From positions 124,001 to 188,000 of the IMG/VR virus record IMGVR_UViG_3300021959_006010: a DNA stretch of 64,000 nucleotides; one strand, 5' to 3'. The notes below the pieces were generated by a model. That model did no database searches, had not been told where the DNA came from, and worked only from the letters and a program-made list of their open reading frames with translations. Of the stretch, positions 32,563-35,245 are shown piece by piece. Both the position numbers and the translations under genes were made by a program. Position 1 is the stretch's first letter. Every line of letters starts with the position of its first letter.

Positions 32563-32591
32563 AGTTTAACATCTATTAGCTAGTCTGTCAA
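32563..32591 (-). promoter_or_regulatory. Sigma70-type promoter
   Basis: TTGACA-17-TAAACT. Confidence 0.7.
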
Positions 32592-33715
32592 CTTCTAAAA
32601 ATCAAGTTGTACATATCTTTGTTTACTTCTTCAAACGAAGTTCCGTAAAAGTTATCTAAATCAATTACATATTGTTTAAATTTTTCAACTTGTGCAGGAT
32701 TGTACATGCCAAAGCTATCTTCTAAAATATCTTTTACACTGTCTGTTACTAGTTTGTGTTGTATTAGCCATTGTTTAGCACTATCTTTTAGATTTCTTGC
32801 ATCTAAGAAAGAAGGATAATTTGTAACAACTTGGCTACGGTCAAACTCTTTTAGTCCTAGCGATTCAATATATTTTTCTATCTTTTTACTTTGATTGATA
32901 TTAAACATACTTAAAGTTACACTAATTCCGACATATATAGATTTGTGTTCTATAAAACTTAGAAGACTTTTTAAATTGTTTTCAAATTGATTCCATATAG
33001 AGTGTTGTCTTACATAATCATTAACTTTTCCTATTCCGTCAATACTTACATAGATATGTGTAGTTTTACACTTTTCAAATATTTCTAACCATTGTTCTGT
33101 AAAAGGTTCGTGTAAATTAGTCGGCATTTCTAGATGTATTTTTTCCAATTGTCCTATACTATCTAGATGTTCTAATAATGCTAAATGCTTTTTCTGGTAA
33201 GTAGGTTCTCCGCCCATCAATTTTAAAACTTCAAGAGATGATAAATCTAATGTGCTCCATTCAAAAAACTCTATTCGTTCTGTTCTAATATGTTCGTACT
33301 CGTTAGGTAATTTTACATTGAACCATTTGCTCGAACTCCGTGGCATACACATTCTACAAGCTAAATTACAAGCATTACCTGGAGTGATCTCTAGGAATCT
33401 TAGTTTTTGATCTAAAAAGTCCTTGTTGTCTAATAAATGACGGAACTGTTTTAGTTTATCTAATCTATAACTTGAATGTCTCAACGATTCTGCTTTCCAA
33501 CAAGCACTACATCCTTGTGGTTTTTCTCCTCGAAGAAACTGTTTTTGTAGACCTATATAATCAGTTGAATTTAATAAACCAGACTCGCCAACTGAATCTA
33601 ATGTACCGTTATATCGACAACACGGTTTAATATTATCTGTTTCGATAAGTTTATTATGTCCTGCTAGTGTAGAAGAAATAAATGGCAATACACAAAACGT
33701 ACTTGGTAAAATCAT
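32588..33715 (-). CDS. Radical SAM protein with an N-terminal auxiliary Cys cluster (twitch/SPASM-like)
   Basis: CNLACRMC; FCVLPF...PCC...GCSACW; MGGEP; VSIDG. Confidence 0.85.
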   Translation of the reverse strand: MILPSTFCVLPFISSTLAGHNKLIETDNIKPCCRYNGTLDSVGESGLLNSTDYIGLQKQFLRGEKPQGCSACWKAESLRHSSYRLDKLKQFRHLLDNKDFLDQKLRFLEITPGNACNLACRMCMPRSSSKWFNVKLPNEYEHIRTERIEFFEWSTLDLSSLEVLKLMGGEPTYQKKHLALLEHLDSIGQLEKIHLEMPTNLHEPFTEQWLEIFEKCKTTHIYVSIDGIGKVNDYVRQHSIWNQFENNLKSLLSFIEHKSIYVGISVTLSMFNINQSKKIEKYIESLGLKEFDRSQVVTNYPSFLDARNLKDSAKQWLIQHKLVTDSVKDILEDSFGMYNPAQVEKFKQYVIDLDNFYGTSFEEVNKDMYNLIFRS

Positions 33716-33736: not shown

Positions 33737-33811
33737 TGGAGTGAGCGGCGAGACTCGAACTCGCATGAGACAGATTTGCAATCTGTTGCCTAACCTTTCG
33801 ACCACGCTCAC
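33737..33811 (-). tRNA. trnC: tRNA-Cys(GCA)
   Basis: GTGAGCG/CGCTCAC acceptor stem, U73, CCA encoded, ACAGA-TTGCAAA-TCTGT, GTTCGAG T-loop. Confidence 0.95.
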
Positions 33812-34125
33812 ACTGTATATTCTACTTCTGGTATGCCTATTTTTTCAATTGCGTGTTGGCATACACGACACGGCTTTGCTAATCTAGGATTACCATCTCT
33901 GTCATAGCGTTCGATTACAATCTTTCTGATTGCAGTCCAATCTTTGCATTTACGCAGAGCGTCAATTTCTGCGTGTAGGAAAATTGCATCAGGCTTACCT
34001 GCTTCAACTGCAAACTTACCTTGCAGTGGATGGCTCTTTGTGTAACTGTTTGTACCAACTGCTAACTTGCGTCCTCGCTTGTCATACAGTGTTGCAGTTA
34101 AATTAAATTCGCCTCTGTTTTGCAA
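33808..34125 (-). CDS. Zinc-dependent deaminase (CDA/dCMP/TadA superfamily)
   Basis: HAE...PCRVC; TTG start with AAGGA RBS. Confidence 0.85.
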   Translation of the reverse strand: MQNRGEFNLTATLYDKRGRKLAVGTNSYTKSHPLQGKFAVEAGKPDAIFLHAEIDALRKCKDWTAIRKIVIERYDRDGNPRLAKPCRVCQHAIEKIGIPEVEYTV

Positions 34126-34144: not shown

Positions 34145-34222
34145 TGGTCGGGGATGCAGGATTCGAACCTGCGGCTTTTCCGCCCCAAACGGAACACTCT
34201 GACCAAACTGAGCTAATCCCCG
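34145..34222 (-). tRNA. trnP: tRNA-Pro(UGG)
   Basis: CGGGGAT acceptor stem, TTCCG-TTTGGGG-CGGAA, CCA encoded. Confidence 0.95.
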
Positions 34223-34296
34223 TGGCATAGGTGGAGGGAGTCGAACCCCCATTAACGGTTTTGGAGACCGCTGTGTTGCCATTACACCACACCCAT
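34223..34296 (-). tRNA. trnW: tRNA-Trp(CCA)
   Basis: GCGGT-CTCCAAA-ACCGT, G73, CCA encoded. Confidence 0.95.
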
Positions 34297-34332
34297 AAAA
34301 AAAGCCCCTAACATTATTAGTGCTAGGGGCTT
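34297..34332 (-). terminator. Intrinsic terminator immediately upstream of tRNA-Trp (attenuator terminator)
   Basis: GCCCCTAGCA-ctaataa-TGTTAGGGGC followed by T7. Confidence 0.88.
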
Positions 34333-34354
34333 GTCAACGTAATAAAAAGTCACG

Positions 34355-34417
34355 TCAAGACATACCCCTGCATCCTGGAGGCCAACAAGTAATGTTTGTT
34401 GTGTTAGTCTTGAACAT
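34355..34417 (-). CDS. Putative attenuator leader peptide MFKTNTTNITCWPPGCRGMS
   Basis: AAAGGA RBS 7 nt before ATG; consecutive TGT TGG CCT CCA codons; last codons overlap the antiterminator arm. Confidence 0.75.
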   Translation of the reverse strand: MFKTNTTNITCWPPGCRGMS

Positions 34418-34446
34418 GTATCTATCCTTTCATTTAGTATGCGTAT

Positions 34447-34475
34447 ACTATAACTTATTTATCTCTGTGTGTCAA
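34447..34475 (-). promoter_or_regulatory. Sigma70 promoter, with embedded ATAAATA, driving the leader and tRNA-Trp/Pro/Cys cassette
   Basis: TTGACA-17-TATAGT; ATAAATA at 34456-34462 within the spacer. Confidence 0.85.
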
Positions 34476-34661: not shown

Positions 34662-34737
34662 TGGTGCCGGTGCACGGACTCGAACCGCGGACCTACTGAT
34701 TACAAATCAGTTGCTCTACCAGCTGAGCTACACCGGC
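34662..34737 (-). tRNA. trnT: tRNA-Thr(UGU)
   Basis: GCCGGTG acceptor stem, ACTGA-TTTGTAA-TCAGT, CCA encoded. Confidence 0.95.
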
Positions 34738-34743
34738 TAAAGT

Positions 34744-34905
34744 TTATTCTGTTACTTCCTCTACAGGTGCAACATAACCTCTTTTATTTAGTTCCGCAAC
34801 TGCTTTGCTTTTGTGTTTACGGTTGTTATTATCTTGCGATGCACGTACTAGAGCTTCGTTGCTCATTGTGCTTACTTTTACTTCGTTAATCTTTGGCGAT
34901 GCCAT
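34744..34905 (-). CDS. Small hypothetical protein (53 aa)
   Basis: MASPKINEVKVSTMSNEALVRASQDNNNRKHKSKAVAELIKRGY...; GAGGA RBS. Confidence 0.6.
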   Translation of the reverse strand: MASPKINEVKVSTMSNEALVRASQDNNNRKHKSKAVAELNKRGYVAPVEEVTE

Positions 34906-34928
34906 AAGTATTTCCTCGTTAAGTTATT

Positions 34929-35003
<75 letters not shown>

Positions 35004-35009
35004 ATTGTA

Positions 35010-35100
35010 TGGCGGAAACGGAGGGATTCGAACCCTCGGTACGCTTATCACGTACGGCTCCTTAGCAGGGAGCTGGTTTCAGCCACTCACCCACGTTTCC
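35010..35100 (-). tRNA. trnS: tRNA-Ser(GCU)
   Basis: GCTCC-CTGCTAA-GGAGC, long variable arm, CCA encoded. Confidence 0.95.
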
Positions 35101-35169
35101 TATAAAACATATCCCCGCTTTATCAGATACGTTGCATCAGCTATACTGTATGCAGGATATGTTTTAACT

Positions 35170-35245
35170 TGGCTCCCCGAGCTGGACTCGAACCAGCGAC
35201 ATACGGATTAACAGTCCGGTGTTCTACCAACTGAACTATCAGGGA
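35170..35245 (-). tRNA. trnN: tRNA-Asn(GUU)
   Basis: TCCCTGA acceptor stem, CGGA-CTGTTAA-TCCG, CCA encoded. Confidence 0.95.

Follow-up and report, generated by a model that had tools for sequence, protein, structure and literature searches.

The window analysed here is a 64,000-nt stretch of IMG/VR virus record IMGVR_UViG_3300021959_006010 (positions 124,001 to 188,000), from a marine jumbo phage, and on its minus strand a promoter, a small leader gene and a strong terminator lie directly in front of a gene for tRNA-Trp. The following features were identified, all on the minus strand:

34447..34475, minus: sigma-70-type promoter, TTGACA (34475-34470), a 17-nt spacer and TATAGT (34452-34447)
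34425..34430, minus: Shine-Dalgarno site AAAGGA, 7 nt before the ATG
34355..34417, minus: leader ORF of 20 codons plus UGA (34357-34355), encoding MFKTNTTNITCWPPGCRGMS
34407..34418, minus: region 1a, the start codon and codons 2-4 (CAUGUUCAAGAC), 5' strand of the anti-antiterminator, which pairs with 34361-34351
34383..34401, minus: internal hairpin CAACAA (34401-34396) with UUGUUG (34388-34383), whose 3' strand holds the Cys codon and the first two bases of UGG
34376..34387, minus: proposed control codons UGU (Cys, 34387-85), UGG (Trp, 34384-82) and CCU CCA (Pro, 34381-76); GCC.CC at 34382-34377 is also region 1b, which pairs with GGGGU
34343..34372, minus: region 2, UGCAGGGGUAUGUCUUGACGUGA, 5' strand of the antiterminator, partner of regions 1a and 1b, containing the stop codon
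34321..34342, minus: region 3, UUACGUUGACAAGCCCCUAGCA, 3' strand of the antiterminator, whose last 12 nt are the 5' arm of the terminator
34297..34332, minus: intrinsic terminator with a 12-bp stem, a 7-nt loop (stem-loop 34332-34302) and a U7 run (34303-34297)
34223..34296, minus: tRNA-Trp (CCA), the first regulated gene, starting one base after the U-run
34145..34222, minus: tRNA-Pro (UGG), contiguous with tRNA-Trp
33737..33811, minus: tRNA-Cys (GCA), downstream of a gene for a 105-aa deaminase, probably in the same read-through transcript, though a promoter-like site at 33848-33819 could also serve it

The observation made in the first-pass annotation, which described this promoter, ribosome-binding site, leader, terminator and alternative hairpin together with leader codons matching the three downstream tRNAs, was confirmed, as every item it listed is present at its coordinates. 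The promoter scored 11 of 12 and tied for the best score in a 10-kb scan, and the terminator folds at -18.6 kcal/mol (z -4.5). The alternative hairpin is the minimum-energy fold of 34372-34321, at -23.8 kcal/mol (z -5.7), with 0 of 200 shuffles as good. The weak pairing of GCCUC with GGGGU also exists, but is only the minor part of a larger closed fold of the ORF, the main helix of which (34418-34407 with 34361-34351) was missed by the annotation.

The arrangement is more than chance, as the 180-nt element is conserved at 70-84% nucleotide identity in dozens of otherwise diverged phage contigs, and we recovered about 80 distinct variants in IMG/VR and more than 120 marine metagenome hits. Because the pattern searches constrained region 2, members were also retrieved through neighbouring proteins, the terminator and the 5' end of the leader to check that the invariance of this region is real. 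Outside these collections the element matched nothing in Rfam, cultured phages or 185,579 reference genomes: Rfam scans of the window (30-40 kb) and of a relative found only tRNAs and chance-level hits on the leader; blastn and tblastn against cultured phages found no close relative, so the host is not known, with only the tRNAs matching and a neighbouring DNA ligase matching at under 40% identity; and a scan of genome contigs gave 17 hits, all of which are chance matches or an unrelated repeat in a Paceibacterota MAG.

The element is linked specifically to tRNA-Trp, which was the first tRNA downstream in 70 of 72 relatives and in 70 of 70 metagenome variants, while the later tRNAs vary. Among 27 tRNA species, only tRNA-Trp has a terminator within 30 nt upstream, in 32 of 63 contexts under a strict rule, compared to none of the roughly 300 distinct upstream contexts of the other 26 species, though nine of 70 distinct tRNA-Trp contexts in related phages lack the leader. 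A promoter scoring at least 9 of 12 lies at the same place in 72 of 79 relatives, and AAGGA(A) is conserved in the alignment. The ORF is intact (15-22 codons) in 63 of 63 variants, all of which contain an in-frame UGG, whereas the other two frames are open in only 21 and 16 of 63, and the Shine-Dalgarno site, start codon and open frame are conserved through several indels; there are no expression, 3'-end or ribosome data, and all of our evidence is comparative and thermodynamic. The UGG lies 10-19 nt before a GGGG stretch, and the stop codon lies 11 nt after the start of GGGG, inside region 2.

Folding of the alternative states and a search for covariation among homologous leaders had been proposed in advance as ways to check the attenuator reading, and three mutually exclusive structures proved to be conserved. 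The terminator scored -12 to -19 kcal/mol in all variants, and six of its stem pairs have compensatory changes, with 0 of 500 shuffles reaching the observed score. In all 77 variants, the segment without region 4 folds into one hairpin that pairs GGGG with CCCC, with a median of -20.2 kcal/mol compared to -16.0 for the terminator, a median z of -4.1 and every z value below -2.2. In the alignment, 91.7% of cells of this antiterminator are paired, compared to 41-61% when the pairing is slid, but its covariation was not significant because region 2, the most conserved stretch of the element, is almost invariant; divergent variants gave only a few consistent changes (GUU with AAC, GCC with G, and UAUAGGG with CCCUGUA). 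The helix between the start-codon and stop-codon regions scored -12.0 with its own partner, -9.0 with swapped partners and -3.9 with shuffled ones, with 0 of 5000 permutations doing as well, and its compensatory changes are clear: AUG pairs with ..CGUG in 31 variants and GUG with ..CGCG in 16, UCAAGA/UCUUGA alternates with UUAAGA/UCUUAA, and CAAAAC pairs with GUUUUG. The RNAalifold consensus consists of CC.CC:GGGG plus the terminator, and the minimum-energy fold of the full window RNA is the closed ORF plus the terminator, at -42.6 kcal/mol. The internal hairpin is represented in relatives by CAAUUU:AAAUUG and CAAUAU:AUAUUG.

The codons of the leader track the tRNAs that follow across about 110 relatives. 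tRNAs contiguous with tRNA-Trp have a cognate codon in the middle region of the leader in 106 of 113 cases, compared to 75.5 for permuted clusters (sd 3.7, maximum 89), and without Cys and Pro the count is 42 of 49 against 18.3 expected. After a gap of more than 25 nt the count falls to 9 of 24, and upstream tRNAs show no association. Replication in the metagenomes gave 97 of 102 against 70.0 expected, and in frame the count is 165 of 173, against 29 and 30 in the other two frames. Phylogenetically independent pairs went the same way 20.3 times and the opposite way 2.2 times (p about 1e-4), though the tree used for this comparison rests on about 190 nt, and tRNA-Gly(UCC) matches only GGU codons, not GGA or GGG. 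Sister contrasts agree, with IICWPS accompanying tRNA-Cys and IIGWPS tRNA-Gly, and SSFQ accompanying tRNA-Phe where SSLQ occurs without it. Only one Trp codon sits in the sensitive position in 52 of 63 leaders, where classical attenuators use runs of control codons, but Trp, Cys and Pro are adjacent and matched codons cluster at positions -3 to +2 relative to Trp, so these counts do not decide either way whether control codons are enriched here as they are in such runs. Two bases of UGG and the whole Cys codon lie in a covarying hairpin, and the Pro codons pair with GGGG, so part of their conservation is structural.

We suggest, with fairly high confidence, that this is a ribosome-mediated (leader-peptide) transcription attenuator that gates a phage tRNA operon beginning with tRNA-Trp and acts as a multivalent sensor of tRNA supply. 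In this model the RNA made from the promoter can fold in three ways: a closed ORF fold, in which the start-codon region pairs with the stop-codon region (1a:2b) and the Pro codons pair with GGGG (1b:2a), leaving region 3 free so that the terminator forms; an antiterminator, a long hairpin from GGGG (34368) to CCCCUAGCA (34321) that uses up the 5' arm of the terminator; and the terminator itself, directly in front of tRNA-Trp. With no ribosome, the closed fold and the terminator would form and transcription would stop, and a ribosome that runs to the stop codon would sit on region 2, so that the antiterminator could not form and transcription would again stop. A ribosome held up in the middle of the ORF, at the invariant UGG or at neighbouring codons for the other tRNAs of the operon, would cover or separate regions 1a and 1b but leave region 2 free, and the antiterminator would then form before region 4 is made, allowing RNA polymerase to read through into tRNA-Trp and the contiguous tRNAs. 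After a stall at UGG, region 1a lies behind the ribosome and could in principle re-pair with 2b, and it is our assumption that steric hindrance or a second ribosome blocks this. The leader would therefore act as an OR-gate sensor of decoding capacity for exactly the tRNAs it controls, giving negative feedback on phage tRNA supply. Our analysis demonstrates the sequence features and their conservation, the alternative folds, covariation of the closed-fold and terminator helices, the linkage to tRNA-Trp and the in-frame matching of codons to tRNAs, whereas translation of the ORF, stalling, read-through (which was not measured under scarcity of charged tRNA) and the physiological trigger are inferred from the geometry.

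The interpretation given in the first-pass annotation is supported in its core claims of a translated leader, a terminator/antiterminator switch and control codons matching the downstream tRNAs, which passed every computational test that could have refuted them, but several of its additions are not. It proposed that the deaminase is made on demand along with the tRNAs, but the deaminase appears incidental, as it lies downstream of the leader in only 4 of 82 relatives. Its suggestion that a PPG motif makes EF-P status a second input has no support, because a PP(G) motif is not conserved (22 of 63 leaders have one Pro and 3 have none), and a ribosome stalled on the second Pro would start to cover region 2. 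Its suggestion that anticodon nucleases are the trigger is likewise not supported, and nothing in our analysis tests it.

Other explanations were considered and appear unlikely. The element could read general translation capacity, through ribosome availability or elongation rate, with the Trp, Cys and Pro codons arising as by-products of RNA structure; most leaders have a single Trp codon, UGG and UGU lie in a covarying hairpin, CC.CC pairs with GGGG, and the three-helix architecture would work with any slow ribosome. However, this reading is difficult to reconcile with the exclusive linkage to tRNA-Trp among 27 tRNA species, the frame-specific matching to contiguous downstream but not upstream tRNAs, the independent pairs and the sister contrasts. 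An RNA-only switch that binds tRNA or a protein directly, in the manner of a T-box or a protein-mediated attenuator and with an incidental ORF, is less likely still: the regulated genes are tRNAs, the terminator/antiterminator architecture is present, and an invariant UUGG could in principle pair with a CCA anticodon or a 3' NCCA end, but there was no Rfam match on the leader at E values up to 1 in the window or in the relative scanned, no T-box match was produced, the element is only about 140 nt with no Stem I-like platform, the Shine-Dalgarno site, start codon and open frame are conserved through several indels, and codon matching is frame-specific, which an RNA-only sensor does not predict.

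It is also very unlikely that the promoter-to-terminator unit is an independent small gene whose terminated RNA of about 140 nt or 20-residue peptide is the functional product, such as an sRNA like attenuator-derived rnTrpL, a small protein, or a RiPP precursor for the nearby radical SAM enzyme, with the tRNAs made by unregulated leak-through. The unit has its own strong promoter and terminator, its RNA is highly conserved, a radical SAM gene lies 0.6 kb downstream in the window, and liberated attenuator RNAs can act in trans (PMC6614838). However, the peptide is not conserved as a protein, since subfamilies read the same ACAACAA stretch in different frames (TT against QQ) and the C-termini vary (GMS, GTS, GLS, GMF, GYVLT, or a stop 13 nt earlier), and the RiPP idea was rejected because a radical SAM gene lies within 1.8 kb downstream in only 4 of 82 relatives and the frame of the peptide is not conserved. 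This reading explains neither the mutually exclusive helices nor the codon matching, though a trans-acting role for the terminated RNA in addition to attenuation is not excluded. The U-run abuts the tRNA, leaving no room for a separate tRNA promoter; an internal promoter using the invariant TTGACG near the stop codon was considered, as a weak TATTTT lies at the right spacing in some relatives but not in the window, but a start there would still include the terminator, and this possibility was not pursued and is not excluded.

The mechanism is an established one, while its target and codon logic are new. Like the Escherichia coli trp operon attenuator (trpL) and the his and pheA leader-peptide attenuators, the element has a short leader ORF with a Shine-Dalgarno site, regions 1:2, 2:3 and 3:4 that exclude one another, an intrinsic terminator before the regulated genes, Trp codon(s) in region 1, a stop codon positioned so that a finishing ribosome masks region 2, and a default state of termination. 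It differs in that the regulated genes are tRNAs rather than amino-acid biosynthesis enzymes, there is usually one Trp codon rather than a run, region 1 is bipartite so that the closed state also buries the start codon, and the element is encoded by a virus. In the multivalent attenuation of the ilv and thr operons, one leader likewise carries codons for several inputs (Ile/Leu/Val or Thr/Ile), so that a shortage of any one relieves termination, but here each input codon corresponds to a tRNA gene in the controlled operon and the codon set changes between relatives as the tRNA set changes. The pheST attenuator (pheM leader) and T-box control of aminoacyl-tRNA synthetase genes also regulate components of the decoding machinery by sensing the state of the matching tRNA, but pheM controls a synthetase, and T-boxes bind uncharged tRNA directly without translation. 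Phage-encoded tRNAs that compensate for codon usage or replace host tRNAs cleaved by defence nucleases (PMC10264068, PMC11464382) provide a biological rationale for topping up particular tRNAs during infection; those studies concern which tRNAs phages carry, and our literature searches found no description of demand-dependent control of phage tRNA transcription.

More likely than not, the leader ORF is a codon-by-codon table of contents of the operon it gates, in which every tRNA transcribed contiguously with tRNA-Trp is represented by a cognate codon next to the UGG (Cys, Pro, Ser, Ile-AUA, Gln, Tyr, Phe and others), and the list is rewritten in evolution whenever the tRNA set changes. The phage would then measure with a single ribosome whether any of these decoding capacities is limiting, whether through codon-usage mismatch, host shut-off or tRNA-cleaving defence systems, and switch the operon on only then. 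This would be the first attenuator known to control tRNA genes, extending leader-peptide attenuation beyond amino-acid operons, and a natural, compact sensor of about 140 nt for specific tRNAs whose specificity is set simply by the codons in the leader. The co-evolving codon list is also an unusually clean comparative signature that could be used to search for similar sensors elsewhere. Such a demand-sensing switch would make directly testable why phages carry particular tRNAs, whether for codon compensation or to counter tRNA-cleaving defences, and when those tRNAs are needed. Phage tRNA genes have usually been treated as passive, constitutively expressed supplements, but a demand-sensing switch would show that phages monitor the decoding capacity of the host in real time and regulate tRNA supply by feedback, and this phage seems to make these tRNAs only when they run short.

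Reading of the minus strand confirmed every element that the first-pass annotation had listed, so its observation stands in full. These elements and the neighboring genes, all on the minus strand, are as follows.

34475-34470 and 34452-34447, minus strand: promoter, TTGACA and TATAGT separated by 17 nt
34430-34425, minus strand: Shine-Dalgarno site, AAAGGA
34417 (ATG) to 34357-34355 (TGA), minus strand: ORF of 20 codons encoding MFKTNTTNITCWPPGCRGMS
34332-34297, minus strand: terminator, AAGCCCCUAGCA / UGUUAGGGGCUU followed by U7
34296-34223, minus strand: tRNA-Trp(CCA), placed by ARAGORN one base after the U-run; tRNA-Pro(UGG) follows it without a gap
33808-34125, minus strand: 105-aa CDA/dCMP-type deaminase (PF00383), the ORF between tRNA-Pro and tRNA-Cys, inside the tRNA cluster
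33811-33737, minus strand: tRNA-Cys(GCA)
32588-33715, minus strand: 375-aa radical SAM protein (CX3CX2C motif, PF04055) of unknown role, directly after tRNA-Cys

A consensus scan scored the promoter 11 of 12 and reported this terminator as by far the strongest of the seven terminator-like sites in 10 kb. Folding of the alternative states, which had been proposed beforehand as a check on the idea, gave the energies listed below. In the minimum-energy fold of the full terminated transcript (34297-34440, minus strand), the Shine-Dalgarno region (AAUGAAAGG) also pairs with ACUUUUUAUU of region 2, the 5' strand of the antiterminator; conservation of this pairing was not checked, but the finished leader RNA would then be closed to further translation.

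Folding energies and z-scores of segments of the window RNA
Terminator: -18.6 kcal/mol, z -4.5
Alternative hairpin proposed in the first-pass annotation, 34372-34321: -23.8 kcal/mol, z -5.7
Whole transcript: -42.6 kcal/mol, z -4.2

The window belongs to a 275-kb IMG/VR contig, for which we found no close cultured relative, no Rfam match on the leader, and no true match to the element in 185,579 reference genomes. The 19-mer used as a search pattern is also part of an unrelated repeat found near many contig ends of a Candidatus Paceibacterota MAG (JASGCE01 contigs; loci L272, L275-L281, L283 and L284), with which no tRNA or terminator is associated. Relatives were retrieved by several routes, through neighboring proteins, DNA patterns for region 2, the terminator, and the 5' end of the leader, resulting in about 80 distinct variants at 70-84% nucleotide identity. 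A metagenome scan gave more than 120 further hits, and the records that state a source are marine.

The linkage of this family to tRNA-Trp is specific. tRNA-Trp was the first tRNA after the element in 70 of 72 variants and in 70 of 70 metagenome variants, and one of the two exceptions (related locus L071) has a tRNA-Trp gene visible in the alignment that ARAGORN missed, whereas the later tRNAs vary and include Pro, Cys, Met, Ser, Ile, Gln, Tyr, Lys, Arg, or none. Among the 27 tRNA species in these loci, only tRNA-Trp has a terminator-like hairpin and U-run within 30 nt upstream, in 32 of 63 contexts under a strict rule, against none of the roughly 300 distinct contexts for all the others. Sixty-one of 70 distinct tRNA-Trp contexts carry the leader and nine do not, and a promoter scoring at least 9 of 12 precedes the leader in 72 of 79 variants. 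In some relatives (L019 at 2388-2469, L073 at ~700-790, and also L003, L050 and L088), the tRNA-Trp(CCA) after the attenuator is 83-88 nt long with a long stem-loop variable arm, like a class II tRNA, which is unusual for tRNA-Trp; the window carries the ordinary 74-nt form. In L019 (2297-2372) and about 15 other relatives, a structured insert of 80-95 nt, closed by ACUACACUA...UAGUGUAGU, of unknown function and with no Rfam match, sits between the terminator U-run and tRNA-Trp.

Alignment of homologous leaders for conserved Cys, Trp and Pro codons had also been named in advance as a test, and we found that the ORF is intact in 63 of 63 variants, at 15-22 codons starting with ATG or GTG, while the other two frames are open over the same span in only 21 and 16 variants. 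Trp is present in every leader, whereas Cys is absent from 10 and Pro from 3. UGG lies 10-19 nt upstream of the invariant GGGG and is always in frame despite several indels, and the stop codon lies 11 nt after the start of GGGG, though in two variants it comes 13 nt earlier. The peptide itself is not conserved as a protein: subfamilies read the conserved ACAACAA stretch as Thr-Thr or Gln-Gln, and C-termini differ (GMS, GTS, GLS, GMF, GYVLT). The constraint therefore falls on the RNA and on the act of translation, not on the product.

We detected three mutually exclusive structures, for which covariation had likewise been set out as a test. The terminator (C) scores -12 to -19 kcal/mol in all variants, and six of its stem pairs show compensatory changes, with 0 of 500 shuffles reaching the observed scores. 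For the antiterminator (B), when region 4 (the 3' arm of the terminator) is left out, all 77 distinct variants fold into one long imperfect hairpin that pairs GGGGUAUGUCUUGA... with ...AGAUAAGCCCC, with a median of -20.2 kcal/mol, more stable than the terminator in 74 of 77 variants, and a median z of -4.1, every value being below -2.2. On the alignment, 91.7% of cells are paired, against 41-61% when the pairing is slid by one to three columns, although covariation is not significant because the 5' strand is nearly invariant. The apical part of this hairpin, as read from the alignments, exists in several unrelated sequence versions: GACUUU/AAAGUU, GACGU/ACGUU, GACAU/AUGUC and UUAACU/AGUUAG.

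In the third structure, a closed ORF fold (A), the RNAalifold consensus pairs the Pro codons (CC.CC, region 1b) with GGGG. The much stronger helix, which the first-pass annotation did not see, pairs the start-codon region CAUGUUCAAGAC (34418-34407, region 1a) with GUCUUGACGUG around the stop codon (34361-34351, region 2b). This helix scores -10 to -15 kcal/mol in nearly all variants and shows repeated compensatory changes: AUG with ..CGUG in 31 variants, against GUG with ..CGCG in 16; UCAAGA/UCUUGA against UUAAGA/UCUUAA, which ties the UGA or UAA stop codon to codon 2-3; and CAAAAC/GUUUUG, along with a double change in the related locus L220. Each start region binds its own stop region better (-12.0) than swapped partners (-9.0) or shuffled ones (-3.9), and none of 5000 permutations did as well. 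Region 2 takes part in both A and B, which explains why it is the most conserved stretch. The minimum-energy fold of the full window RNA is A plus C, the terminating state.

How these structures would act is inferred by us from the geometry. Without translation, A and C would form and transcription would end before tRNA-Trp, while a ribosome that reaches the stop codon would sit on region 2, so that B cannot form and C terminates. A ribosome delayed in the middle of the ORF would cover 1a (early codons) or 1b and the internal hairpin (at UGU-UGG-CCN), leaving GGGG, 10-19 nt downstream of UGG, just outside the ribosome. B would then form before region 4 is transcribed, and the polymerase would read into the tRNAs. 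One weak point of this model is that after a stall at UGG, region 1a is behind the ribosome, and we assume that steric hindrance or a second initiating ribosome keeps it from re-pairing with 2b.

The boldest claim of the first-pass annotation was that the control codons match the downstream tRNAs, and the leader codons do mirror the tRNAs that follow. We counted tRNAs with a cognate codon in the middle of the leader, from codon 5 up to three codons before the end.

tRNAs with a cognate codon in the middle of the leader, with the expectation from permutation
tRNAs contiguous with tRNA-Trp (all gaps up to 25 nt): 106 of 113; expected 75.5, sd 3.7, maximum 89
Same, without Cys and Pro: 42 of 49; expected 18.3, sd 3.3
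tRNAs after a gap of more than 25 nt: 9 of 24; no permuted expectation
Metagenome set: 97 of 102; expected 70.0
Metagenome set, leaders not seen before: 58 of 59; expected 44.9

By species, the counts are Cys 34 of 34, Pro 30 of 30, Ile(UAU) 10 of 10, the CAU-anticodon tRNA 10 of 10 (scored against AUA), Gln 7 of 7, Tyr 4 of 4 and Ser(UGA) 10 of 12, though tRNA-Gly(UCC) matches only GGU codons, and Cys and Pro codons also have structural roles. The tRNAs called Met(CAU) always co-occur with AUA codons in the leader, so they may be lysidine-type tRNA-Ile2 rather than tRNA-Met. In related loci such as L050, L104 and L106, the tRNA-Ile(UAU) genes are 92-94 nt long and some tRNA-Cys genes are 83 nt long. 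Related contigs also carry tRNAs with A34 anticodons other than Arg-ACG (Ser-ACU in 18 contexts, Asn-AUU and Asp-AUC), and one tRNA has a UUA anticodon; the window has the deaminase inside its tRNA cluster, and phage-directed A34-to-inosine editing is a possibility that was not tested.

Three controls point the same way. tRNAs within 2 kb upstream, which the attenuator cannot control, show no association; for example, Gln matches in 0 of 4 cases upstream against 7 of 7 downstream. In the window, a second tRNA group (Asn, Ser-GCU, Gly-UCC, then Thr-UGU) lies upstream of the leader (34662-35245, minus strand) with two small ORFs between the tRNAs, one of which is a 57-aa zinc-ribbon protein conserved in at least 60 related contigs, and this group has no attenuator of this family, as the profile finds a single copy in the window. 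Over both the variant and metagenome sets, the match is 165 of 173 in frame, against 29 and 30 in the other two frames. On a tree built from the flanks, phylogenetically independent pairs go the same way 20.3 times, the opposite way 2.2 times, and show no change 26.5 times (sign test, p about 1e-4), though the sequences are related and the tree is short. Sister contrasts illustrate the pattern: ..IICWPS.. precedes Trp-Pro-Cys-Ser-Ile while ..IIGWPS.. precedes Trp-Pro-Gly-Ser-Met-Ile, and ..SSFQNWCSPS.. precedes Gln-Pro-Phe while ..SSLQNWCSPS.. precedes Pro-Ser-Gln-Cys.

Of the other explanations we considered, a general translation-rate sensor without codon specificity fits the architecture but not the matching of leader codons to tRNAs, and we regard it as unlikely. 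An independent sRNA, peptide or RiPP gene is more doubtful still, as it is contradicted by the varying peptide frame, by the lack of room for a separate tRNA promoter, and by the radical SAM and deaminase genes following the leader in only 4 of 82 relatives, though a trans-acting role for the terminated RNA in addition to attenuation is not excluded (compare PMC6614838). The least likely is a T-box-like RNA-only sensor, which has no Rfam or structural support and does not predict frame-specific codon matching.

The mechanism is that of the trp/his/ilv leader-peptide attenuators, and the structural criteria for membership tested here were satisfied, although enrichment of control codons was not clear-cut, with one Trp codon in 52 of 63 leaders. 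The differences are that the regulated genes are tRNAs, that the sensor is multivalent with a codon list that co-evolves with the operon, that region 1 includes the start codon, and that the element is viral. Full-text literature searches found no report of attenuation of tRNA genes or of phage tRNA operons. Recent work on phage tRNAs deals with codon compensation and escape from tRNA-cleaving defenses (PMC10264068, PMC11464382), which is the natural physiological context, but it is untested here. Comparative evidence supports the core of the first-pass interpretation, while its side claims, that the deaminase is made on demand with the tRNAs, that EF-P status may be a second input, and that anticodon nucleases may be the trigger, are not supported or were not assessed by this analysis. 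We are fairly confident that the element is a ribosome-mediated attenuator of the tRNA operon, and we consider it somewhat more likely than not that it senses the specific tRNAs it controls.
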